Below are positions 3,159-45,200 of a DNA stretch of 64,000 nt, one piece after another. Below the pieces are notes generated by a model. The model was not told the origin of the DNA and did not search any database. It saw only the letters and a list, made by a program, of their open reading frames with translations. The stretch covers positions 20,832,001 through 20,896,000 of the forward strand of contig NC_047066.1 in assembly GCF_902459465.1 (NCBI RefSeq), in the 5' to 3' direction. Each line of letters opens with the position of its first letter. Position 1 is the stretch's first letter. A program made the translations under genes and the position numbers. The DNA comes from Asterias rubens. Lineage: Eukaryota.

Positions 3159-3601
3159 CTCTAGCTACCGGGCAACTTCGGTAGTCTAGTTGGTAAGACA
3201 CTGCTCTAAAATTGCTAGGGTCGTGGGTTCGAATCCCACCCGAGTAACATGCCTGTGATATTTTTTCAAAGGACTCGGGAAAGTACCGAGTATACAGTGC
3301 TAACACACATCGGTGTATGGGTAAAAACCAAAAATTAATATTCTTTATCCCCGATGCAAATTTAACATCTCTTATAATCGTTGCGGTACCCGCTGCCAAA
3401 ACATAGGATTCAAACTGCCTCTAGCTACCGGGCAACCTCGGTAGTCTAGTTGGTAAGACACTGCTCTAGAATTGCAAGGGTCGTGGGTTCGAATCCCACC
3501 CGAGTAATATGCCTGTGATATTTTTTTCACAGGACTCGGGAAAGTACTGAGTATACAGTGCTAACACACATCGGTGTATATAATGGGTAAAAACCAAAAC
3601 A
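3159..3601 (+). mobile_element. Two tandem copies of a tRNA-derived SINE-like repeat (3159-3332, 3419-3601)
   Basis: Near-identical ~175-bp units with A-box-like TAGTCTAGTTGGT and B-box GGTTCGAATCC, followed by a non-tRNA tail. A degraded reverse copy lies at ~21060-21196. Confidence 0.75.
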
Positions 3602-3624: not shown

Positions 3625-3994
3625 AGGCATTGGACACCTTTCGGTAATTGTCAATGACAATGAGTATCCTCACAATTGTGTATCCTACTGGGCATAAATT
3701 GACAATTCTGTGAAAAAGTTTACTCAATTGGTCATAAAAGTTGCAAGAGAATTTCAAAAGAAAAAACACCTTTCTTGCACAAATTTGTGTGCTTTCAGAT
3801 GCCTTAAGAAGGCTTCAGGCCTTAAGACCTTTGATATTTGAAAGAGAAAATACCTCTTTCTCAAAAACTATGTTACTTCAGAGGGAGCGTTTCTCACACT
3901 GTTTTGTATAATCAACAGCTCTCCATTGCTAGCTACCAAGTAGGTTTTTATGCAAACAATTATTTTCAGTAATTACAAATAGTGTCAAGTGCCT
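3625..3994. mobile_element. Kolobok-type MITE family A copy
   Basis: TTAA|AGGCATTGGACAC...GTGTCAAGTGCCT|TTAA: TIRs, TTAA on both sides and AGG/CCT termini. The same internal sequence recurs many times in the window. Confidence 0.75.
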
Positions 3995-4299
3995 TTAAAA
4001 CTGATCATCTTGGGGGGAACTCAAGTTGATGTTAAGGTATTTCTTAATGAACTAAGATCAGGTGAACCAAAACTACTTTGAATGAGATAATCTACCACAA
4101 CATTCTTGCTGGTAAAGGTAAACTGACCATTTCAAAATGATCATTTCTAATGAAAAACAAAATCAACAGAAAAAAAACCTAGAACATGTATATTTGCGTT
4201 TGAATGGTACGTGCACTCCAATAAATAAATAAGGATTTATAATGACCATTTAATGGTCCATGATAATGTACAGACATGATACCTTCCCTAAAAAAAACC

Positions 4300-7065
4300 T
4301 CATATTCCTTCCGTGAAGGAGAACTTTGTTGAAATCATCCCAAACCCTGCACTAAGCCCTATGCCAGCAAGCAGCCAACTTGTGTAGGAACTTCCAACAA
4401 GAAAAAAGAGTACATTCAAGGGAGTTAAGAAAACCAAGAGTTGGACTTTTATGTTGTGATTATTGATCAGCTGGTACTGTACAAATGTTGACAAAACCGG
4501 AAAGGTTAGGAGAAATAATCCAATTTCCAAAATGGCCACAAATCCCATTCCCACTAGCCAGAGATCACTTTGCATCACTGCTGCTGAGTATACATTGAGT
4601 AAACTTACCCCAACAACAACCCCACTTGTACTTCTGGTGGTTAGATTCACAAAGACAATTGGTTCTCTTTGGAGGCTCAACAAAATCAGAGCTGAGACTG
4701 AATTCCAGATTTCCCACTGCTCAATTGGGCAATTCATGCAGGCAAGAAGGTAAGCTGAGATGGTTAACAAGTTGCAAATAAGTGCTTCTTGGTTTGGTGA
4801 AGACCCGAATGGATCTCTCTTCTTTATGAAAAAACAGTGGGCACGTAGAGCAAACACAAGAAGCATGCTGATTATGCAGTACAGTTGCAAACAAGGCATT
4901 TTCAAATCTTTGCCACTGTCACTCAGTGCTTGATTTGCCTCTGTAATGTAAGTCATTAGGGCAACAATTGCAAGAAAACACACAGAGGGCTTCAAGGTGA
5001 ACTGCTTCTGAAGAGGCCTACTTGATTGAAAGTTTATCAAAAGGGTGAGCATAACAAAAGAACACGCTGTACAAGAAAGAGTATACTGTAAAATTGTTAA
5101 ATTGGAAGCAGTTGTACAGAGCATCAGAGAGACTTTTAATCCAGATGCAAGTCCAAAGATGCATGAGAGTATAAAGACCAAGAATGGACCAAGCTGAAAA
5201 GATGCTATTCTAAGGAAGATTGCTGAACCCAGAGTACAGGCAGTAATGGTCAGCCAGCTGCTCAAATTGTATTGTGAAACTGAACTTGATGGCTGAATCA
5301 CAAATATTAGACAAGTTGTCATGATCCACAGAATGTTGATTTTACGAGCAGAGGGGAGATGACGTAAATGTTGGGTAGTTACCTTCAGGCTTAGTAAGGC
5401 TGAGATGATGTTTACAAAGCATGCTGCCTGCAGTGATGTAGGTGTGCTGTCATAAAGAATGTAACACAGCGGTTGCAGTAGACTGTGATAAGAAAGTATT
5501 ATGCTGACTGTGACAGATAAGATGTACATAGACGCAGCCCTGATTGAAAGTTCACCCTGCTGTTCAAAGCAAAACAACTTGGTTATCGTTAACGTAAGAG
5601 CTACTATGCTGAATGAGCCACTTATAGGAGACTGATTGACCCCAGCTAAAACTTCCACCAAGTATGGAGCCTTAAAGGCGTGTAGCGCTGACCCTATCCA
5701 AGCACAATACCAGGTAACAACACCGGCTGACAGCAACCTGACAAAAAGGTAAACACTACAGACACTTGTACACAGTAACAAAAAGGACGAGTATAGTTGA
5801 TGCTGGTACAAAAGTGATTCAGCGTAAACCAGCCCTCCCATGAAAGCAATGAGCAGAGCTGATGAGAGTTTCTGGTTTTGTGAGCTGGATACCAAGAAAC
5901 AAGCAACGGACAGGACTGCCATAGAGATGAGACCATAAGTGATCCATGTGAGGTCCAAGTCTTGAAGCTCTAAATGTCTTGGTATACTGAAATACACAGC
6001 CAGTGTGTAGATAAGACCAACAGCAACACCACATATCAACTTGAACATTTGCTGCACGTGCCCTTTTTGTGATGCTGTCCAACCAAGAAGCACATTAGTT
6101 AGTACTGTGACCGATAACCAATCAACCATGAATGAAACATGTGTGTATTTCATGAGTATTGACCCAAGAAGAAGTGCTGTTACACCTGAAATCCATCGAA
6201 TCATGATGATGTATTTGTAATGAATCCCATAACCTTCAGTCCATGCTCTCAGTTCCAGTAATGTCATTAAAAAACATGGTGTAAAAATCAAGAACAATAG
6301 TCTCAATACACTTATCAACTCAAATAAATTCCAAATATTCATGATAATAAATACCTCTGCAGGAGTTGAAACATATAAAATTAAAAGTAGAGAAACTTCG
6401 ACATGACCTAGAACAAAAGCCCCCGAACTGGTAAATGATTTATAATTGGGCTTACGAAATGAAGGTGATGTCGGCGTAACAAATAGTCTTAATATGAGAA
6501 ATCCATGAATAATGACGCTGTAGGGAATATAACTTGGAGAGGCCAGCATCGTCAACATGCAACAGGTTACTGCGACAGAAACACTGGGGAAGATGGTGAA
6601 CAAAGACATCTCTAATGCCTCAGCGAGAGTAGGCTCTTCTTTAAGGAACTCCTCAAAGTGGACCAGAATCCATCCACCTGTCATCACTATGGACATATTC
6701 AGCAAGAGGATGGTAATGATGTTGTAGAAGGACTCCCAAAGAAGCGGCAAAGCAGAGTAGATGATGCTCATTTGGGCTGCAATAAAGACGCACAGATACA
6801 CCAGAACAGCTCTCCGTTTTGCTCCTCCACTATGCATGAAATGGATCAGAAGCCCTCCTATGACCACAACACCGAGGAGTAGTTCTCCAGATAGGGCCAA
6901 AGCAAGGAACATGCCAGGTAAAGCTGTGATGAAGACACGGCCATCGTACTGGAAAGGTCGGAGCTCAAACCAATCAGGGAGTTCCTTTTGAGGGTCGGTT
7001 GGAGAAGGAGGTGGGCTAGAGTCAGTGGGTGATGGAGGAGGCTGATCACTGGTAGTTCGTCTCAT
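4300..7065 (-). CDS. 921-aa multi-pass membrane protein, NO EXINE FORMATION 1 (NEF1)-like, single coding exon
   Basis: Uninterrupted 2766-nt ORF with a perfect Kozak GCCACCATG, preceded by a NAGNAG acceptor TTTTTCAG|CAG at 7075-7080 (5'UTR intron). Many hydrophobic segments. Motifs FQYDGRVFITALPG, IAAQMS, EEPTLAEALEMSLF..P, PSFR..FVLGHVE, LYSSFLLLCTS..RL and HLRHLPSARK..CLIFVIQP align in order with Arabidopsis NEF1 as recalled (FAYNGRIAIALVP, LAAQIS, ENPSIVVALERLLF..P, SSFK..FILGQLE, MYPSYMVILTS..RL, HFSHVLSAKR..CMFILMQP). ORF confidence is high; the family call is from memory. Confidence 0.85.
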   Translation of the reverse strand: MRRTTSDQPPPSPTDSSPPPSPTDPQKELPDWFELRPFQYDGRVFITALPGMFLALALSGELLLGVVVIGGLLIHFMHSGGAKRRAVLVYLCVFIAAQMSIIYSALPLLWESFYNIITILLLNMSIVMTGGWILVHFEEFLKEEPTLAEALEMSLFTIFPSVSVAVTCCMLTMLASPSYIPYSVIIHGFLILRLFVTPTSPSFRKPNYKSFTSSGAFVLGHVEVSLLLILYVSTPAEVFIIMNIWNLFELISVLRLLFLIFTPCFLMTLLELRAWTEGYGIHYKYIIMIRWISGVTALLLGSILMKYTHVSFMVDWLSVTVLTNVLLGWTASQKGHVQQMFKLICGVAVGLIYTLAVYFSIPRHLELQDLDLTWITYGLISMAVLSVACFLVSSSQNQKLSSALLIAFMGGLVYAESLLYQHQLYSSFLLLCTSVCSVYLFVRLLSAGVVTWYCAWIGSALHAFKAPYLVEVLAGVNQSPISGSFSIVALTLTITKLFCFEQQGELSIRAASMYILSVTVSIILSYHSLLQPLCYILYDSTPTSLQAACFVNIISALLSLKVTTQHLRHLPSARKINILWIMTTCLIFVIQPSSSVSQYNLSSWLTITACTLGSAIFLRIASFQLGPFLVFILSCIFGLASGLKVSLMLCTTASNLTILQYTLSCTACSFVMLTLLINFQSSRPLQKQFTLKPSVCFLAIVALMTYITEANQALSDSGKDLKMPCLQLYCIISMLLVFALRAHCFFIKKRDPFGSSPNQEALICNLLTISAYLLACMNCPIEQWEIWNSVSALILLSLQREPIVFVNLTTRSTSGVVVGVSLLNVYSAAVMQSDLWLVGMGFVAILEIGLFLLTFPVLSTFVQYQLINNHNIKVQLLVFLTPLNVLFFLVGSSYTSWLLAGIGLSAGFGMISTKFSFTEGI

Positions 7066-7689
7066 GGTGGCAAACTGCTGAAAAATAATTAAACAAAATC
7101 ATAAGCTGTCAATATTGTTTAGTAATTTATGTTATTCAGCGACAATTTTTAAATAAATTTTTTTTCATATAATACAAATTTACATGGAAACAAAATTACA
7201 GCTTAGGTCAAGGTCATGGGGTTTAGAAACCCCATTATAAAATTTGCCAGAAATTAGTGCGACTAGCTAAGTTTTTAAGATAACGTGAGCAACAGTATAC
7301 TTCTGTTTATTGTGCTACATAATATGTTGCTGCACTGTTTAAGGCCTACTGTTAGTACAAAAATAAAACATTAGTTGACTACTCAGATTTTTTTGCATGC
7401 TTTGTTTTTTGCTTGTTTTCACGCTTATAAATACCGTTTTTAAAATCAATTAACAACACAATTGAGCATCTTTGCCCCAGTTGTTAGATCAGTGATCCTT
7501 GTCACACTAAGGTAAGGTCATCGTCATAACAGGTCCAAATTACATTGTTTATTAATTTACAGGGTTATAAAAACTATGAGTATCATCAGACAACTACTAT
7601 GTTATGTAAAAAGTTAACTTGATTGAAATTTTGAAAGCAAAGAAAAAAAAAGAAAGATGTCAGCAATTAACAAATTTAAAGGAAAAGTT

Positions 7690-7806
7690 TCCGTATGGCG
7701 CCACCACTTTTTCATTCGAAATAAAATAATATAGTATCTAATTTACCTGATTGATATATCCCTTTTTTTAAAAATGAGTGAAAAAGTGGTGGCGCCATAC
7801 GGAAAG
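7690..7806. repeat. Short palindromic MITE-like element
   Basis: TTCCGTATGGCGCCACCACTTTTTCA ... TGAAAAAGTGGTGGCGCCATACGGAA form inverted arms of ~26 bp. Confidence 0.7.
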
Positions 7807-9456
7807 TTATCCAATTTAAATGTCAAACTTGGGATTGTGACTGTCTATATGAGTATGTCATGTCTGTGTGGCATTGCCATTGCATTGGTCATGACTGTGT
7901 CACTTGGGTTTTTGGGGTGTGTGTGTGTGCTGTCTATCACTTTCAGTGAGTAACCTTCTATTTATAAATATTTTTATAAGTTAGTAATTAGTATGAATGT
8001 AATTTTTTAACATTTATGATTAACAATCAATGTTTATTATATTAGCCTAAGGCAAACAGTCATATTTATTGGCAATTTTATATCATCCGATAATCATTAT
8101 CAATATCCTTATTTTTAATATTATTAGAAAATTAGAGAGATAAATATTATTCAGTTCATTCAAACTTTATTTTGTTAAATTATTTTAATTATTTAGTAAA
8201 ACAAGTAAAACATATTATAATTTTTAAAAATATGCGTCAGATTTTCAGACAAATTTACCTTTCTGACAGCTTCCAAATGAAGTGACTTGAGTGGAATAAA
8301 GATAAATTAGCGATTGTCGTACGCCTATTCACGAAGATTGAGCTAATTTTGTGAATACGAGTCGATACTGACAATACCAATCGCCTGTGTACTGTGCAGC
8401 ATTAGATACACGGGCGCCGCCATTGCTCCGTTGTTCATCTATCCGCCTATTCGTCAATTGGTGGCGCCCTTCAAGATTAATGGCGCACCAACTAAAAAAA
8501 CTCCAATAATTCACAAGTCGTTCACACCGGTGGAAAGATGGAGCAAAGTTGTCATGTGTGCTATTCGGATGCCGGAATATCCAAGAAAGAGTCAGGTAAG
8601 ATTGCGTATCTTAAGGACACTGGACACTATTGGTAATTGTCAAAGACCAGTCTGCTTGCTGTATCTCATGCAAAAATCTGTGCAAATTTGAGCTCAACTG
8701 GTCATCGAAGTTGCGAGGAGAAAAAAAACCTTGTCATACGAAGTTGTGCGCTTTCAGATGCTAGTGATTTCGACACCCATATAAATAGAATTCTAATTCT
8801 GATACAATTATACCAATGGTCCACCAGTTATATTTATAATCCTCTATAACCTATAGAGGTTTCTCTCATCTCGCACCCAGTTGCTAAAAAAAAATCCAAA
8901 CGACATTGCAATTGGTAAAATATTTTAATATTTTCATTATGACGTAATTTTGACGGAAAGAGCCAATTTTGACGAAAGGGAAAAGAAATAAAAATTATTG
9001 CAATGTCGTTTGGGAACAAAAACTTCGCCACCCGGTTCTGCCGGTGTACTGAGCGGGTTGTCTCGCGGACTGTTACCCGGAGTATAGCCATCTAAACATT
9101 ATGAAAAAACTATGCCAATACATGTATGTACATAATAATCTTAACTTGTGCCACAAAATAGTACGTTGAATCCGTTTGCAACCATCAATCTAATTCTATT
9201 ACACAACAATACAGAGTTCAAAAAAAGAAGCACGACGAGCAACTTGTAAATTCCACATTTCTAAATACTTTGGTGGTATCTCTTTCTTGCGTTTAACAGA
9301 AAACAATCCCTTTGTTGCATTTAACAGAAAACAATCTCTTTATTGCATTTAACAGAAAACAACCTCTTCGATTAATAATAATAATAATAGTGACAGTGAA
9401 CTTACGGCCATTACCTGGAGACAAACTCTTGGAGGCTGATCGTTGCAAATCTTTAA

Positions 9457-9836
9457 AGGGAGTGGACACTATTGGTAATTACTCAAAATAATTATCACCA
9501 TAAAACCTTTCTTTATTACCAGTAATGGGGAGAGGTTGATAGTATAAAACATTGTGAGAAACAGCTCCCTCTGAAGTGACGTAGTTTTCGAGAAAGAAGT
9601 AATTTTCCACAAAATTTGATTTTGAGACCTCAAGTTTAGAATTTAATGGTCTCGAAATCAAGCATCAGAAAGCACACAACTTAGTATGACAAGGGTGTTT
9701 TTTCTTTCATTATTATCTCGCAACTTCGACGACCGATTGAGCTCAAATTTTCATAGGTTTGTTATTTTATGCATATGTTGAGGTACACCAACTTTGAAGA
9801 CTAGTCTTTGACAATTACCAATAGTGTCCACTGCCT
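9457..9836. mobile_element. Kolobok-type MITE family A copy
   Basis: TTAA|AGGGAGTGGACACTATTGGTAATT ... AATTACCAATAGTGTCCACTGCCT. Confidence 0.75.
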
Positions 9837-22865: not shown

Positions 22866-25800
22866 ATGATGAAAACTCTACGGGATCCACTGATTCTGTG
22901 GATGATGGTTGCGATACAGTCATTAGTGAGGATTCGATGTCAGTCGGGTGGTTCAATGGGACCGAGTCCATCGACAGATGTCAGTAGTGATATGGGAGGT
23001 AAGGCAGTGACATAAGTTAATTTGATATTGGATATTGGACATTCACGTAGGTTTGTACAGCGAATATCATAGTTTTCTTTTCAATATTGGACATTTGACA
23101 TTCACGTAGGTTTGTACAGCAAATATCAATGCTGTTTTCCCCGAAATTGGACATTCACGTAGGTTTGTACAGCGAATATCAATGTTGTTTTTCAATATTG
23201 GACATTCACGTAGGTTTGTACAGTGAATGTTTACCTTTTTCATCTACAATAACAAACTAACTTTACTGCCATGGTGAGGCACCAAATATTTCTGCCATCA
23301 GACACAAGTCTCAATGGTTAACACTTTTATCCGGGCATTCCTTGTTGGTTCCCATGTACAAAAACACCAAGAGCCGTTCCCTGTTATATAAACTACAGTG
23401 CTCATCACTTTTAAAGGCACTGGACACCAGTCCTTTGGTAACTGTCAAAGAGCAGTATTCACCATAAAGAAAGCATAAAATAGCAAGTCTGTGTAAATTT
23501 GTACTCAATTTGTCATGGGGAGAGGTATAAAACATTGTGAGAAACGGCTCCCTCTGAAGTGACATAGTTTTCAAAAAGAAGTAACTTTCAGCGAGTCTGA
23601 TTTTGAGACCTCAGGTTTAGAACTTGAGTCTCGAAATCAACCATCTGAACGCACACACCTTCGTGTGTAAAGGTGTTTTTTCTTTCATTATTATCTCGCA
23701 ACTTCGACGACCAATTGAGCTCAAATTTTCACAGGTTTGTTAATTTATGCATATGTTGAGATATACCAAGTGAGAAGACTGGTCTTTGACAGTTACCAAT
23801 AGTGTCCAGGGTCTTTAATAAAAATTAAAACATGTTGAGTAAGACTGTTTTGCCACATGGAAATACACAATGGTCCGTTTACGGTGAAGTGAACACAATT
23901 ATACATGAATTGGAAAACATCTTGATCAAAATGGTTCTTACTATCATTCAAACAGCCCTTTTATTTTGTATTTTTAGTTTAGGTTGTTATTTGTTCCATT
24001 CGCTTTTGTTTTTGTTTTGAACTATAGTTTCTGATTGCGTAAGTTCTGTATGTCAGAATGGTGGAACATGCTACAACGTTGGGATGTCCATTGATGATTA
24101 TAGTTGATGGGGGTGATAGCACAGGATTTTTTACACAGTGTCACAATGCGGGCAGCAGTATTTTGGAGCCGTTGAAGTCGGGAAATCTGGTTGTTAGGAA
24201 GACTGTAGAGAAGAGCATTGCCGTTGTCAAGACGAGAAGTAACAAATGCGTGAATGACCTTTTCAGTGGCACTTTTGTCCAAGTACTTGCGAATCTTACC
24301 TATATTCCTGATGTGATATGATGATAAACGAACAATGTTGTTGATGTGTGGCTGAAGTGTCATCGATGAATCAAAAATAACCCCTAAGTTCCGAGCTTTC
24401 AGCGAGGGAGCTATCCGAGCATCACCGATGGAGATGTATGCTGGCACTGAAACCTTAGTTAACTGTTGACGTGACCCAAATAAAAGGAACTCTGTCTTAT
24501 CATCATTTAACTTCAGGAAGTTTTGTTGTGTCCAACGTCGAATCTCTTGGATGCATTTCTCAAGTCTTGCAATAGATGCATTGGCGTTTTCATGAGAAGA
24601 TTTAAACGTGATGTATCCGATTTGGCTTTTAAAACAATTACAAATAGAACAAACATACTGGTTAGGTTGTTTTTCCAAGGACGTGCCGCAAGGGTCCATA
24701 CAGTCTAATGACAAAATTATGACAAAGAAATTAGAATGGTTCAAACTGTCGATCAAACGCCGTTTTTCATTTATTGATATGTTTCGTTTCGCTTGTTTTT
24801 AGTTTAATTTGTTTTTGCTTTTGTTTTTGTTTTGAACTATAGTTTCTGATTGCGCAAGTTCTGTATGTCAGAATGGTGGAACATGCTACAACGTTGGGAC
24901 GTCCGTTGATGATGAATTTTGTGATTGTGAGTGGCCGTTTAGTGGAGAATTCTGCGAAACATCGAGTAAGAAAATTGTTTTACTTCTAGCCCTCCTCGTT
25001 TAAATACCATTTATACATCTAGCATGGATGCCAGCCATTAACAAACTATGCCGTGGAATCATTTTCTGTTTCACTTTTTCAAGTTTGTCTGGTCAATACT
25101 ACTACTAGTAGCCCTCTTCATGTAAATGCCATTCATTTCTATTCCTTGCAGTTTTGGCCCATGCTGTTCCTCCATCTTCTTCTCTGTCTACCTCTTTTCC
25201 TTTTTCCTGTCCTTGGTTGCCAGTCCATATTCTTGTTGTCCATCTATTGTCATTTCTTCGGGCAGTGTGTCCAGCCAATCTCCATTTAGCTCGTTTTATT
25301 GTCCTTATGGTGTCTCGAACTTTCTCGAAGTTTTCTTTCGTATTTCAGTGCATTCAATCTTGTCTCTATTCGAGACATGTAAAATGGCTCTCCATTGCTA
25401 TTAATTGTACTGTGCCGAGTTTATGATCTATCAGTTTTGTTGTTGCCCATGTTTCTGCCCAATAAGTTATGCTTTGTGTAAGTTTTTACAAAATATTATA
25501 AACTAAACAAACTATTTTTATAATGGGGACTAGTGTTGTGTTTCTTATTTGCAGGTTCTGGGGTCGACTGCCTAAGCACTGTGTGTCAGAATGGTGGAAG
25601 TTGCCACAACATTGGCTTGTCTACTCCTGATGAAATTTGTTATTGCCCGCTGCCGTTCACCGGAGAATTCTGCGAAACATCGAGTGAGAAAACGATTGTA
25701 CTTTTTTACAACAAGTTTGCACCTTATCGTGTAAAGTTTGATATTAGTTTAAATAATAGTATTAATTTGTATTGTTTGCAAGTCTTCTCAACCGCATTTT

Positions 25801-28800
25801 CATTACAATGTATTGATGCAATTTCCTCACTATCTTCTTTCTATCTTATTTCTAGGAAAGCCTCTTCACCAATTCTAAATTCCACTCTTTCCCTTTTTGC
25901 CTTTTGCCAAGCAATGCCCCTGCATGTACTTAGTTCACCTCCCCCGTCTTCGGTTTTGTCACCCTCTTTTTTTTCTCCGGTTTCTTGGAGTCCAGTTGGT
26001 TGTTTTGCATGCCCACCTGTTGTCATACTTCTTTGCTAGGTGACGTCACTTTACCCAGTATTTTAAAAGTAAATTTCATGTCTGTGCGTATTCAGTTCCA
26101 TGTGTTCTTAACGGGTTTTCTTTTATTCTTGTTTAAAAGTTTAACTCTGTTATCTCGTTTTCCTTTGTACCGTTTTGAAACCATATAGTTGATGTCTGTG
26201 CAGGCAACCCATGTGGGAACGGAGGATCCTGTACCGCAAGTAGGCCTAGTGTTGATACTTTTTATTGCAGTTGTTTTTCTGGATGGACGGGCATTTTTTG
26301 TGAAATCAACGGTAAGTCTACAGTCAAGTTCTATGTTTTAGTGATGTCATTGTTTTGTGTTTGTGTGATAATTCTGGGTATACCCACTGAAGTTTATGGT
26401 CTTTAAAATTAAAATGGCTCATGCCCTCGGACAACCCCCAAACAGTTCCTTCCATATTTCCGGAAAATGAATGCAAAAGCATTTTTTTAATAGGATAGCC
26501 AGGGGTTCGTGCAACTTCAAAGTGTCATACAATGATCCCTATTGTTGTTGTCCTTCGACGTTCACTTGGCAATCTACCAGCCTGTATGAAAATTACTGCT
26601 TATTTCAATAAAACCACTCTCTCGTAATAGTTACACACAAGTCAATGGCCATGCATGGGACCCTTTTTAAATGATACACTTGGATACAGAGTTTGAGAGG
26701 GCATTAGTTCAACACCAATGCACATTGCCCTATATACGGATAGTGTAGCCGCCATTTTTGTTTTTAATTGGCACTACCACACGTTGCTTGCCCGGGAAAA
26801 ACTGCTCCCTCTGTATATTTGTGTAACAATAATATAACAATAATAATGTAAAAAATGGTTAATGGCCTGCCGTTTCGACCCTAGCAGAGTCTTTCTCAAA
26901 GGCAAAAAATGCCGTTGAGAAAGACTCTGCATGCTAGGGTCGAAACGTCAGGCCATTATTCATTTTTTGCATTATACCATCGGTCCATTTGGTTGGTAAG
27001 TTGTTTGCAACAGCTAATTTTATTTTCTAATAATAATAATATAGTAAACATTTCATTCCCCCCCCCCAAAAAAAAAAAAAAAAAAAAACCGGGCCGGGGA
27101 CACAATGGTTTGCTTAGCATGCTTTTAGTCTTGTATGGACTACATGTATTGTGTAATTATTTATCAATTTTTGTTGTGATAACTTTGTTTTTCTCTGATC
27201 ATCCAACCGTTTTGTGAGTAGTTGTTGACGTCTGTGCAAGCTACCTGTGTCAGAACAGAGGAACCTGTTTCACAACAGCTACTGGTACTCCTAGTTGTAG
27301 TTGTATGTCAGGCTGGACGGGCACTCTTTGTGAAACAAGCAGTAAGTTAACAAGTTATGTGTTTTTGTTTGTTTTGTTTTTCCCAAAATATCTCAATAAA
27401 TTAGCGTAAAATTATAAAAGGATTACGTACAAAGGGTCATGAGAAAAGGCACCATTCCTATAGGCTTATACAGGGCCTGGTCCCTTTAGATTATAAATTA
27501 ATTGGATTTAGTTTATAACAATAACAATATTAATTGATGAAATGAGAGAGAAAGGTATATAAGGCATATAGCAAACATAGAACAAAAAATGGTTTTTGAC
27601 TGATGATGATTATAGTAATGATGATGACTGGGGACGGTGATGATGATAATGGTGATTCACAACATTTGAATGGCGCCATTTGATTTCAAAAACCATTCAA
27701 AGGCGACAGCTTCTCCAGTAAAGTTAGCATTTAAAGGCAGTGGACACTTGGTAATTACTCAAAATAATTATTGGCATAAAACCTTTCTTGGTGACGAGTA
27801 ATGGGGAGAGGTTGATGGTATAAAACATTGTGAGAAACGGCTCCCTCTGAAGTGCCATAATTTTCGAGAAAGAAGTAATTTTTCACGAATTTGATTTCGA
27901 GACCTCAGATTTAGAACTTGAGGTCTCGAAATCAACCATCTAAACGCACACAACTTCGTGTGACAAGGGTTTTTTTTCTTTCATAATTATCTCGCAACTT
28001 CGATGACCGATTGAGCTCAAATTTTCAGAGGTTTGTTATTGTATGCATTGAGATACACCAACTGTGAAGGCTAGTCTTTGACAATTACCATTAGTGTCCA
28101 CTGCCTTTAAATGTCTGATGGAAGACGTGAGTCATGAGAGAAGCTTTGAAGGGTCCAGGTTTGTTGTCAATTTCGCTAAGAAATGATGGGAAGGGGTTCC
28201 ATACTCGAGGGAAGCAATAGAGGAAAATGCCCGATAAAATTTCACTGAAAGTTGGCCATGTGGAACTGGCCGTCCCATTATACTTGTTTTACTTCAAAGA
28301 ATACCATTGCACACTGACAGAGCAAAGTATAGTGCAATAAAGTTCCGACAGATTTGCCATTTATGTCGTAAGTGTCGTTCTGTAAACTAACTTCCCTTGT
28401 TGCGTTAATCCTAAACTCGTCTTTTTAAAATTATTATTTGGTTTAACTGTGGTTTATTGTCTTCATTTGTACCATTTTGAAATCGTAGCTGACCTCTGTG
28501 CGAGCAACCCATGTGGGATCGGAGGATCCTGTTTTACAACTGCTGATACTCTTTATTGCAGTTGTTTTTCGGGGTGGACGGGCACCTATTGTGAAATCAA
28601 TGGTAAGTCTGTGTTTTAGATTTTTTTGATTTTTTTCTGCGTGAGTGTATGATAATTCTGGGTATGCCCACTAATGATTATGGCAACCAGTGTTTATTTA
28701 TAGTTTTTTTTAGTAGTTGCACCTCTTGTGGGGTTCGCCGGGACTGGTCAAATAACCTCTTTACATCAAAACAAGAAGGCTGTTATAAGAGGACCAAAAC

Positions 28801-42200: not shown

Positions 42201-45200
42201 TTTCTCTGACTCGTTTTTGTTTTTGTTTTTTTATGTTATGCAATTCGCCAGACACACAAGGCCTGAAGGCCACTTCAAGGTGTGGGCTACAATTATTTGT
42301 TCCACCTGTTCTTAGGGCTGAAACAGGGTTACCCCTTTTACAGTCCATACAGTCATCAATCAGAAGCTTGGCTGGTAGAAAGCACTACTTCCCCAACTTT
42401 ATGTAGCAAATGTCACGACCGGGATTCGAACCCACACTCTGCTGACTGAACACCAGAGCTTGAATCCCGTGCTCTTAACCGCTTGGCCATGACACACCAC
42501 AAGATTTGCTATTAATAAAGGCTGCTGACATGAGATTTAGAAATGGATTCCGCATACAATGTATCTTAACCGGTCACACTTCCTTAACCTTTTCTTACGG
42601 TGTTACATTCCTTGCGTTCGGTAACGGAGCCCCTGATATCTTCAGTGCAGTTGCAGCCATCACTAATGCCAAGAATGGAGATGCTGGTCTTGCTATTGGT
42701 GCTTTGTTTGGTAAGACCCTACAGATATTGGGTGCGTTCGATTATGTTCCCCGGGTCGACCCCGGTCTGCCCCTGGTCAGTTCAAATAGCTTTGACGTCA
42801 TTCCAGGGGCTCACCCAGGTCAACCCAAAGTGCCCTGCTTGTGGAATGAGTCACGTGGGCCAATAAACTCACAACTGTACAAGTGTGGCGGTCCTGTGTT
42901 TTTTAACAATAACGCCCCACTGCATTTTTCATTTAAACTGAGAAAGGTTGTCGTCATGGTCGTGCAATAAAGGACCTCGCCTTCAGCTCGGGCCTTTATC
43001 GCAGAGCTTCGATCCTGCCGGTTTTAAACTGCCGGTTTTAAGAACTTTTTTCCACTCTTTTATTCCCTTAGTTAAACATATTTGTTTACTTCACTCATTT
43101 AATTCCTTCTTGATCTGTTTGTGTACGGGTATTTCTTTTTCTCTGCTTGTAATGCGAAGTAGAGTTTAATAATATAGGTATTGCGTAATATAAATGTCCA
43201 TTGGTATTATTATTATTATTTTTAGTAGTAGTAAATATCAGATGTTTGTTGTCTTTTCCAGGTGCTGGTGTCTTTGTCACCACAGTGGTCACAGGCTCCG
43301 TCTCTATAGCCAGGCCCTTTGAACTAGCTCAGAGACCGTTTTTAAGAGATGCAATTTTCTACGTTGGTGCAGCCTTTTGGACTTTTTATATTTTGTACAC
43401 GGGAGAAATATGGACTGCAGAAGCTGTAGGTAAGGCTATGTGGCACCAAGGCAATGACCAGGGGGCATGGAGGCAATCGCCTTTGTTGCCTCTGTGAAGT
43501 ATCAGCCCTGCATTAAATAATTATAAGGATTTAGCTTTGAAAGTATTCTTTCATCTCCTTTCTTCTTTTTCCCCCTTTAGGATTTATCCTGCTCTACGTT
43601 GGTTATGTTTTAGTCGTTCTGATTGGTCGGAAATTGTACCAAACAAAGTTGAAACCTAAAGTAGTACGCCTCAGGCCGACTGTCTCCATTGGGACTAACC
43701 AGGGTAAGTAAAGCACTGGTTTTTAAGGTTTTCATATAGCGCTTTATCACACCCGAGGAACGTATCAAAGTGCTCAGTATTTTTTTCCTGTATTTTGTAT
43801 GTCGAGCTATAGTTTGAAGTATGAGACCTTTCCCTTTATAGCACCTTGTAGGGTTAACGAGTGATGTGGCACAATATGCAGCCAATCAGACCACGCCAGG
43901 GCAAACCCCTTCTTTTTACGATAAGTGCACTGGGATCTTTAACTTAACTGCAACAGGATTTGAACTTGCAGTCTTCAGACTGGCAGTCTGAAGGCTCTTA
44001 ACAAATATCTGTTTCAGTAAATGGCCAGTGATCAACCAATAGTAACAGCTGTTTGCTATGACTTCAAAAAAACGCACCTTTACTGAGCCATCCAGCCCTA
44101 AAACGTTTTTCTCTAAAGCTCTTGACTGCAATTAGAAAAATTCTGTTTATTTTCCTACAGATTTTTCTGAAAATGAAGGATATTCATCTTCGCCAGAAAC
44201 AGATGGTTTTGGGTACGGAGCTATCTCGCAGTATGTTGGTGACAGATATAAACCTCAAGACACTACAAAGGTGCCACATCATCCCACAGGTATCAGTGAC
44301 AATATTTCTTCCCCCAGGTTGTCAATAAGCCTGGGCAACTACTGCGACTAGTTTCGTAGTCAGGACTGTTGATGGCTTAATCGGGTCGCGACTACTACAA
44401 AAATAATCGCCACTCTCACTCTGTCCTCTGTTTCAGGCATTTCAGAGGCGTTGTTAGACACTGAACAAGTCGTCTGCGCATCACTTCTGGGAGAGCAGAA
44501 TACAGCCATTGCTGGACAGAATGGTCTTCCAGATTTTACCAGGCAGTACCGTCCAAGTGGTAAGAATAAAAATGATTAGTAGGATTCGAAACTTTGCATG
44601 GTGGAAATACGATAGGGAAATTAGTGAGTTGGGGCGGTTCTGAAAAGAACCGTTGGTTTCAACTCTTACTAATAAATGATGATAATGGGTGCGTTCGTTT
44701 AGCTTCCCTGGGTCGACTCAGGTCTGCCCCTGTCCGATCGAATAGCTTTGACGTCATTCCAGGGGCTCACCTGGGTCAGCCCCCAGTGCCCTGCTTGTGG
44801 AGTGGGTAACTTGGGGGCTTGTAACACCATGTAATGACTATCTCTAATGAGTTGGGGTTGTTCTGAAAAGAACCGTTTGTTTAAACTCAACGTTTCGATC
44901 AGTATGCTCTGATCGTCTTCTGGAGAAAATAAAAGTTTTCTCTAGAAGTCGATCAGAGCATACTAAAAAGAACCGTTTGTTTTACCTTGACGTTTCGATG
45001 AGTATGCTCTGATCGTCTTCTGGAGAAAATCGTCTTCTGGAGAAAACTTTCATTTTCTCCAGAAGACGATCAGAGCATACTGATCGAAACGTCAAGTTTA
45101 AACAAACGGTTCTTTTCAGAACCACCCCAACTCATTAGAGATAGTCATTGCATGGTGTTACCGCAAATCTTTCTATATGATATTAACATAATATAACCAT

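Follow-up and report, generated by a model that had tools for sequence, protein, structure and literature searches.

A full-length NEF1-like gene with an intronless coding sequence in the starfish Asterias rubens

We describe a NEF1-like gene in a 64-kb stretch of the genome of the starfish Asterias rubens (contig NC_047066.1 of assembly GCF_902459465.1, C5:20,832,001-20,896,000), which is called the window below. The gene is on the reverse strand and contains a single open reading frame (ORF) of 921 codons. Judged by its sequence, the product is a full-length member of the NEF1 (NO EXINE FORMATION 1) family. With it, an animal branch without annotation is added to a family that is known but biochemically uncharacterised. 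The gene is very probably a vertically inherited NEF1 ortholog that lost its coding introns in the echinoderm stem lineage and persists as a single-copy gene with low transcription under purifying selection. Because orthologs occur in animals, Amoebozoa and CRuMs, the family predates plastids and its origin cannot be plastid-specific. NEF1 is among the large conserved eukaryotic membrane families that have no Pfam model, structure or known activity, and echinoderm embryos would offer an experimental route to it that is independent of pollen. Additionally, the loss of at least 14 coding introns in one stem lineage, with a 5' untranslated region (5'UTR) intron left in place and no parental copy, is a clean case that bears on the debate about wholesale intron loss.

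The NEF1 family in animals, plants and protists

An exhaustive HMMER search was run with a profile of four starfish-lineage sequences that included no plant sequence, and it found 135 proteins. About 20 of these are full-length matches of 900-1000 amino acids (aa) with E-values of 1e-165 to 1e-55. Proteins of ~1100 aa follow at 1e-16 to 1e-4, among them a protein of the amoebozoan Luapelamoeba. The same profile matched a Vanilla planifolia protein named 'No exine formation 1' at an E-value of 2.5e-16. Comparison of an alignment of 16 animal sequences with one of 15 plant and protist sequences by hhalign gave a probability of 100 and an E-value of 4.9e-67 over 870 aligned columns. The match is collinear and runs from end to end, covering positions 32-930 of 941 on the animal side and 32-1061 of 1073 on the plant and protist side, and the two consensus sequences carry the same motifs in the same order. 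Glutamate 152 (E152) is invariant over 38 animal, plant and protist sequences, while F38, P50, G60, G70, W132, S202, P362, E416, L444, K465, N765 and P856 are conserved in at least 90% of them. An earlier note on this DNA, made from the sequence alone, had proposed that the motifs align along the whole length of plant NEF1, and both the HMMER and the hhalign results bear this out.

It is hardly conceivable that the match is an artefact of composition shared by long hydrophobic proteins and that the gene is a lineage-specific orphan. Such a reading could point to Pfam, where none of the 38 members, among them plant NEF1, is matched by a model, to an Atlas feature search that returned 'No exine formation 1' at just 0.82 and was taken as a lead only, and to an identity of 15-19% with the plant proteins. 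Four independent measures contradict it. These are the collinear end-to-end alignment, the HMMER profile that reached a plant protein without having contained one, the invariant or near-invariant polar residues common to the kingdoms, and the Foldseek matches to models of family members at E-values of 1e-14 to 1e-28. As a negative control, quarters of the animal alignment were compared with each other. They gave E-values of 0.03-0.3 only, so hydrophobic composition does not explain the NEF1 match. The same comparison of quarters found no internal duplication.

The NEF1 family spans plants and green algae, Amoebozoa, CRuMs, stramenopiles and animals, and its members are polytopic membrane proteins of ~900-1100 residues. 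Echinoderm members are found in the starfish Asterias and Acanthaster, in sea urchins (Lytechinus) and in the crinoid Anneissia. Spiralian members include those of the annelids Owenia, Capitella and Paralvinella, the nemertean Tubulanus, the brachiopod Lingula, the bivalves Mactra and Pinctada, the gastropods Haliotis, Patella, Babylonia, Biomphalaria and Nucella, and a cephalopod cluster with Acanthosepion. Cnidarian members come from the stony coral Oculina and the octocoral Paramuricea. The animal members are labelled uncharacterised or hypothetical throughout, and the Mactra protein bears an unrelated pleckstrin name. The literature searched holds no mention of an animal homolog of NEF1, in agreement with the statement of the earlier note that no animal ortholog had been characterised.

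In a maximum-likelihood tree of 44 long sequences, animals form one clade (support 100) within which Cnidaria, Echinodermata (98) and Spiralia (96) are separate. Molluscs (100) divide into the cephalopod, the bivalves and the gastropods as expected. The non-animal part of the tree comprises plants, Luapelamoeba, Diphylleia (CRuMs) and the stramenopile Phaeothamnion. Since the branching of the animal sequences equals the species tree, the gene was vertically inherited. These sequence comparisons place its origin in, or before, the common ancestor of cnidarians and bilaterians, from which it has been kept in Cnidaria, Spiralia and Echinodermata. The earlier note had entertained two origins. One of them, an ancient membrane gene of eukaryotes that many animals have lost, agrees with both the tree and the taxon distribution.

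The other origin, horizontal acquisition, did not hold. An intronless gene entering starfish or echinoderms from a plant, alga or protist would account for the absence of coding introns and for the fact that the sole named relatives are plant NEF1 proteins. However, the echinoderm proteins lie inside the fully supported animal clade that follows the species tree across three animal superphyla, and their closest relatives are other animals (23-55% identity, vs 15-19% for plants and protists). The intron-rich orthologs of Cnidaria and Spiralia share intron positions with each other, and the GC content of the starfish coding sequence (42%) is near that of its surroundings (35-42%). Horizontal transfer is thus very improbable. 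That the cnidarian and spiralian sequences are themselves contaminants is opposed by their shared introns and by their animal genomic neighbours.

Approximately 35 of the 135 HMMER matches were looked up by name, and the remainder were assigned via their nearest labelled relative. No vertebrate, arthropod or nematode protein is among the named matches, and every unnamed match is nearest to a labelled mollusc, annelid, echinoderm, cnidarian, plant or protist sequence. Because the profile reaches plants at an E-value of 1e-16, a vertebrate ortholog of ordinary divergence should have surfaced. The gene was apparently lost in vertebrates and ecdysozoans, an absence that we infer from these searches and do not regard as proven. 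Two points weigh against it: the absence from vertebrates, arthropods and nematodes was read from the named matches, and some C-terminal fragments reach no more than 30-35% identity with any labelled sequence, and unsampled phyla could be their source. A broad vertical distribution in animals had been named in advance as something that would remove the novelty of the gene. This applies in part: the distribution is broad in marine invertebrates, but no vertebrate, arthropod or nematode sequence turned up.

Besides the long matches, dozens of matches of 130-180 aa cover residues 792-921 only, and others stop at about residue 62. The last exon of intron-bearing orthologs begins at about residue 787. 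One short match comes from a 50-kb contig of low coding density, on which ORFs are short and sparse, and the nearest relatives of the short matches are molluscs, annelids and a cephalopod. A separate family of small proteins was considered and rejected, since the limits of the matches are the boundaries of the first and last exons of intron-bearing orthologs. The short matches are single exons of animal orthologs that were called as ORFs in environmental DNA.

Several individual sequences are worth recording. P0032 (1068 aa, from Logan/ENA assemblies) forms a long branch at the base of the animal clade and shares only 27% identity with the crinoid protein; an early-branching animal that is not yet sampled, or a unicellular organism close to animals, may be its source. 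Three gene models look contaminated. The Nucella lapillus model P0020 (1541 aa) has a reverse-transcriptase domain in its middle. In the green-lineage models P0035 and P0080 an RWP-RK domain is fused to the NEF1 body, probably through the merging of neighbouring genes.

Gene model and transcription

The ORF is the longest in the window (the next longest encodes 244 aa). At the local base composition, 921 open codons would arise by chance with a probability of ~2e-27. The parts of the gene are as follows.

4300-7065, reverse strand: complete NEF1-like coding sequence, 921 codons plus the stop codon at 4300-4302, no intron (ORF, single copy, RNA coverage, identity to Asterias amurensis, and the ratio of nonsynonymous to synonymous differences, pN/pS)
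7066-7077, reverse strand: 12 nt of 5'UTR within the coding exon (CAGTTTGCCACC), Kozak-like context (sequence and transcript contig)
7078-8258, reverse strand: 5'UTR intron of 1181 nt, GT..AG (splice in X1 record 2; zero RNA depth in non-repeat bins)
8259-8393, reverse strand: non-coding exon 1, minimum extent (X1 record 2; no ATG, in-frame stops)
4179-4299, reverse strand: 3'UTR, minimum extent, which may reach ~3900 (X1 record 1, 4179-6461; X3 record 8, 3900-4852, of which 3900-4096 is repeat-like)

The sequence 5' of the start codon reads ttttcag followed by CAGTTTGCCACCATGA. A transcript contig (X1 record 2) joins 6563-7077 to 8259-8393 and so excises 7078-8258. This intron has GT..AG ends, with the donor AG/GTAAAT at 8259/8258 and the acceptor ttttcag. 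The supported 5' exon (8259-8393) contains no ATG and has in-frame stops. Hence, no AUG precedes the ATG at 7065, and a single exon holds the whole coding sequence. A second contig (X1 record 1) spans 4179-6461, which gives a 3'UTR of at least 120 nt. The intact single-exon ORF and the upstream splice acceptor of the earlier note are therefore both real, and the acceptor is in use. Its 'perfect' Kozak sequence is near-perfect: GCCACC fits the consensus, whereas position +4 is A and not G. A loose check of its remark on the many introns of every other gene in the region showed that the remaining ORFs are short and that two resemble isolated exons.

Raw reads of two RNA-seq runs and two collections of transcript-like contigs were aligned to positions 3900-9800 of the window. 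Bins within the coding sequence are covered at a depth of ~1-10 (run X12), and the depth is zero in the non-repeat bins 7249-7445 and 7840-8430, which cover parts of the intron and of the sequence upstream. Ten nonsynonymous differences in the RNA reads are exactly the substitutions found in the Asterias amurensis protein, so the reads derive from this sister species. Contigs with ~0.7% mismatch (X3) have the same exon-only pattern in A. rubens itself. The gene is transcribed at a low level, and expression, which the earlier note had left to RNA-seq, is documented by this low-depth coverage and by one spliced transcript contig.

The gene has a single match in the 417.6-Mb genome (150 contigs). 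Its closest database protein is an uncharacterised protein of A. amurensis that is identical at 898 of 921 positions (98%). The read-supported differences between the two species comprise 15 synonymous and 10 nonsynonymous changes, and this small sample gives a pN/pS of ~0.21. Across classes, echinoderm proteins are 26-55% identical and synonymous sites are saturated. Nonetheless, an intact ORF has been kept from crinoid to starfish despite 29% identity. These comparisons fit a gene under purifying selection.

Intron history and genomic surroundings

The coding sequence is intronless in echinoderms other than Asterias as well. In Lytechinus pictus, in Anneissia japonica and on a Tara Oceans scaffold that is sister to starfish, the annotated span of the gene equals the length of the ORF and tblastn returns one uninterrupted match. 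Orthologs outside the echinoderms have the following gene spans.

Lingula: 8.8 kb
Oculina: 18.3 kb
Haliotis: 27.1 kb
Owenia: 25.7 kb

Chaining of exact-match exons gave 18 coding introns in Lingula, 25 in Oculina and ~18 in Owenia. The earlier note had listed intron presence in orthologs as a check, and the answer is none in echinoderms vs 18-25 in these three genera. Projected on the protein alignment, 18 intron positions are common to at least two of Lingula, Oculina and Owenia, and 14 are common to coral, brachiopod and annelid. The shared introns lie near starfish residues 62, 84, 149, 188, 253, 279, 337, 365, 410, 443, 510, 548, 648 and 787. As these positions are shared by coral, brachiopod and annelid, the gene of the cnidarian-bilaterian ancestor was intron-rich, with at least 14 coding introns. 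By this comparison, all coding introns were lost in the echinoderm stem, before crinoids and eleutherozoans split. In one intron of the Owenia ortholog (L008:24681-25915), a 69-nt piece that encodes residues 268-290 is present in at least 10 tandem copies, an array derived from an exon.

All coding introns are gone while one 5'UTR intron stays, which indicates a reverse-transcript intermediate. In the proposed mechanism, a single reverse-transcript-mediated event in the echinoderm stem would have removed all coding introns at once. The resident gene may have recombined with a cDNA copy of its own transcript that spared the 5'UTR intron, and this is slightly favoured over retroposition followed by loss of the parent. 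We give such in-place recombination sparing the 5' end roughly an even chance. A pyrimidine-rich YAG acceptor lies no more than 20 nt from the ATG in Anneissia, Lingula and Owenia, that is, in 3 of 7 lineages vs a background of 7-11% (P ~0.017). The threshold for this count was calibrated on the RNA-verified Asterias site, and Asterias was excluded from the count; a stricter first threshold (at least 10 of 12 pyrimidines) had rejected even the verified Asterias site. An ancestral 5'UTR intron that was spared fits at least as well as a gained one. A RabGAP gene that neighbours the ortholog in Lingula maps to starfish chromosome C5, as does the NEF1-like gene.

Three observations count against recombination in place. 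The near-ATG acceptor occurs in 3 of the 7 other lineages, under a threshold that was set after the stricter first try. COMMD8, one of the Owenia neighbours, is on starfish chromosome C8. The AEBP2 neighbour seen in spiralians was not found in the starfish window by a motif search and a permissive tblastn with its first exon. Likewise, tblastx of the ortholog flanks against the window gave no match.

A classical retrogene is the principal alternative, and we judge it a real possibility that falls somewhat short of even. Here a processed mRNA would have entered another locus in the echinoderm stem lineage and acquired there a promoter and a new 5'UTR exon and intron, and the intron-bearing parent would then have been lost. 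The joint absence of at least 14 ancestral coding introns, the presence of one copy only in the genome, the location of COMMD8 on another chromosome, and the lack of the Lingula and Haliotis AEBP2 head-to-head neighbour in the 57 kb upstream in starfish are all as this alternative predicts. However, a processed mRNA would not carry a 5'UTR intron, so the near-ATG acceptors of Lingula, Owenia and Anneissia (at most 20 nt away) count against it by suggesting that this intron predates the loss. The RabGAP neighbour on C5 also speaks against a new locus, and retroposition is not needed for microsynteny to decay over more than 500 million years. No intron-bearing parental copy is present in the 417.6-Mb genome, in which the gene is the single match. 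The earlier idea of a retroposed gene that later gained a 5'UTR intron is thus right about the missing coding introns, and its second half is weakened by the acceptor near the ATG in intron-rich orthologs.

Further observations concern the genomic neighbourhood of the orthologs. In Lingula (L004:1-2263) and Haliotis (L006:1-957) an AEBP2-like gene stands head-to-head with the NEF1-like gene, and the two AEBP2-like genes share the first-exon motif KPSIPTLRSR. The arrangement resembles a bidirectional pair conserved in Spiralia. In the crinoid, QRPTase neighbours the NEF1-like gene at 4 kb; in the starfish, it is on C5 at a distance of 0.81 Mb. This linkage is synteny within echinoderms only, in a neighbourhood that is loosely kept.

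Within the window, the 5'UTR intron contains one repeat that has no part in the function of the gene.

7643-7839: palindromic, high-copy repeat resembling a miniature inverted-repeat transposable element (MITE), RNA depth 80-90 vs 0 in the flanks

The arms of this MITE-like element hold ...aaagtggtggcgccatacggaaa... in inverted orientation. Just upstream of exon 1, the repeat segments 8431-8824 and 9416-9800 have an RNA depth in the thousands, vs 1-10 for the gene, and many reads link 8637-8654 to 9775-9800 on opposite strands. As the reads join opposite strands, the segments belong to a highly transcribed family of inverted-repeat or foldback elements. A tRNA-Ser(AGA) gene (3175-3248, forward strand) and another tRNA-like unit, whose anticodon call is an aberrant 4 nt (3435-3507, forward strand), lie in duplicated flanking sequence ~0.8 kb downstream of the stop codon of the gene. 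Elsewhere on the forward strand there are two exon-like ORFs, one with a Na/Ca-exchanger domain match (Na_Ca_ex, E 6.5e-7) at 42506-42970 and one with a weak EGF match at 25533-26039. Both probably belong to multi-exon neighbouring genes.

Predicted structure, possible function and comparison with known systems

The AlphaFold model of the protein, computed with 38 aligned sequences, is all-helical with 37 helical elements (mean pLDDT 84.9, pTM 0.65), and a hydropathy scan gives ~20-25 membrane-spanning segments. Foldseek matches the model to AlphaFold database (AFDB) cluster models of family members at E-values of 3e-28 to 1e-11, with a template modelling (TM) score of up to 0.68 over 900-1100 residues. 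These matches support the homology. Against the Protein Data Bank (PDB), Foldseek found nothing (best E-value 0.03, TM no higher than 0.17), and the Swiss-Prot models also yielded nothing. Neither the single protein nor the family profile matched a PDB sequence, and the Atlas named clusters revealed no remote homology. On the basis of these models, and for the whole protein only, the family would be one without a known fold. Three AFDB cluster entries bear the automatic names 'Dolichol kinase' and 'Mannosyltransferase', which have no Pfam or PDB backing and were not relied on.

The family occurs in organisms that have no plastids (animals, Amoebozoa and CRuMs), and for this reason its ancestral site of action is not the plastid. 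NEF1 was reportedly introduced as a 'novel plant protein' by Ariizumi et al. in 2004. In plants, NEF1 is described as an unknown plastid integral membrane protein (PMC3220415). Loss of NEF1 lowers the accumulation of lipids and sterol esters in tapetal plastids and abolishes the primexine (PMC3220415, PMC12346373; both citing Ariizumi, 2004). A 2025 review calls NEF1 a plastid membrane transporter and cites the 2004 paper alone (PMC12346373).

The starfish protein would be placed in a non-plastid membrane, such as the endoplasmic reticulum, the Golgi or the plasma membrane. There it might transport a lipidic substrate, or act on one as a membrane-embedded enzyme, by means of the invariant Glu152 and of Glu416, Lys465 and Asn765, which are near-invariant. 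We offer this role tentatively and regard it as rather unlikely; no transporter or enzyme fold was recognised in the structure and sequence searches, which tells against it. The protein could instead be a scaffold or structural membrane protein, an ion channel or a solute carrier unrelated to lipids, with the plant lipid phenotype an indirect effect, and the chance of this comes close to even. The same lack of a recognised transporter or enzyme fold favours such a function, as do plant evidence that is phenotypic only (PMC3220415, PMC12346373) and a best shape match, itself weak, to DUF2339 (TM 0.32-0.34). On the other side, an invariant glutamate of the buried type and conserved Glu, Lys and Asn residues have been kept in predicted helices for more than 1 billion years. 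By argument only, such conserved polar residues would be expected at catalytic or substrate-coupling sites more often than in scaffolds.

A wider proposal, which we put forward as a long shot, is that NEF1 proteins could be a pan-eukaryotic class of transporters or enzymes with their own fold that export or assemble lipidic precursors of extracellular coats, so that the plastid assignment would be wrong or secondary. If true, cnidarians, spiralians and echinoderms would use a NEF1-like protein for the surface layers of eggs, larvae or cuticles. Sea urchin and starfish embryos would then be a tractable route to an activity that has eluded plant work since 2004.

Several known systems can be compared with the starfish gene. 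The bacterial DUF2339 proteins gave the best shape match in the ESM Atlas (TM 0.32/0.34 over 451 residues) and also appear weakly among the AFDB clusters (rank 27). Like the starfish protein, they are large membrane proteins with many helices. Their TM score is below 0.5, they give no sequence signal, and they are themselves of unknown function. The likeness is treated as a common helical arrangement of the models and not as kinship.

Retrogenes and other cases of reverse-transcriptase-mediated intron loss resemble the starfish gene in that all ancestral coding introns are gone and an intron is present only at the extreme 5' end. Unlike for retrogenes, the starfish genome contains no intron-bearing parent copy. 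Given the great age of the starfish event (crown echinoderms), no poly(A) or target-site traces are expected, and no search for them was made.

The nearest relatives are the NEF1-like orthologs of the same animal clade, for example Acanthaster LOC110985436, Lytechinus LOC129254677, Anneissia LOC117118745, Lingula LOC106174833, Haliotis LOC124140327 and Oculina ACROYT_G006361. Animal orthologs are 908-987 aa long and 22-55% identical to the starfish protein, and none is annotated as NEF1-like. An intronless coding sequence is common to the echinoderm orthologs, whereas those of cnidarians and spiralians have 18-25 coding introns.

Arabidopsis NEF1 (AT5G13390) and its plant orthologs differ from the animal proteins in several respects. 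The animal proteins are ~150-200 residues shorter, the main plant insert falling after starfish residue ~330, and the two groups are only 15-19% identical. The coding sequence is intronless in echinoderms, and animals have no plastids, pollen or sporopollenin context. Nevertheless, the plant proteins and the starfish protein share collinear full-length homology. The motifs F-YN-RV-ALPC, GxWxLQF, ExxLF, PxxSSF, GNxxT and PLN are common to plant NEF1 and the animal proteins, and both are polytopic and all-helical, single-copy or low-copy, and without a Pfam domain.

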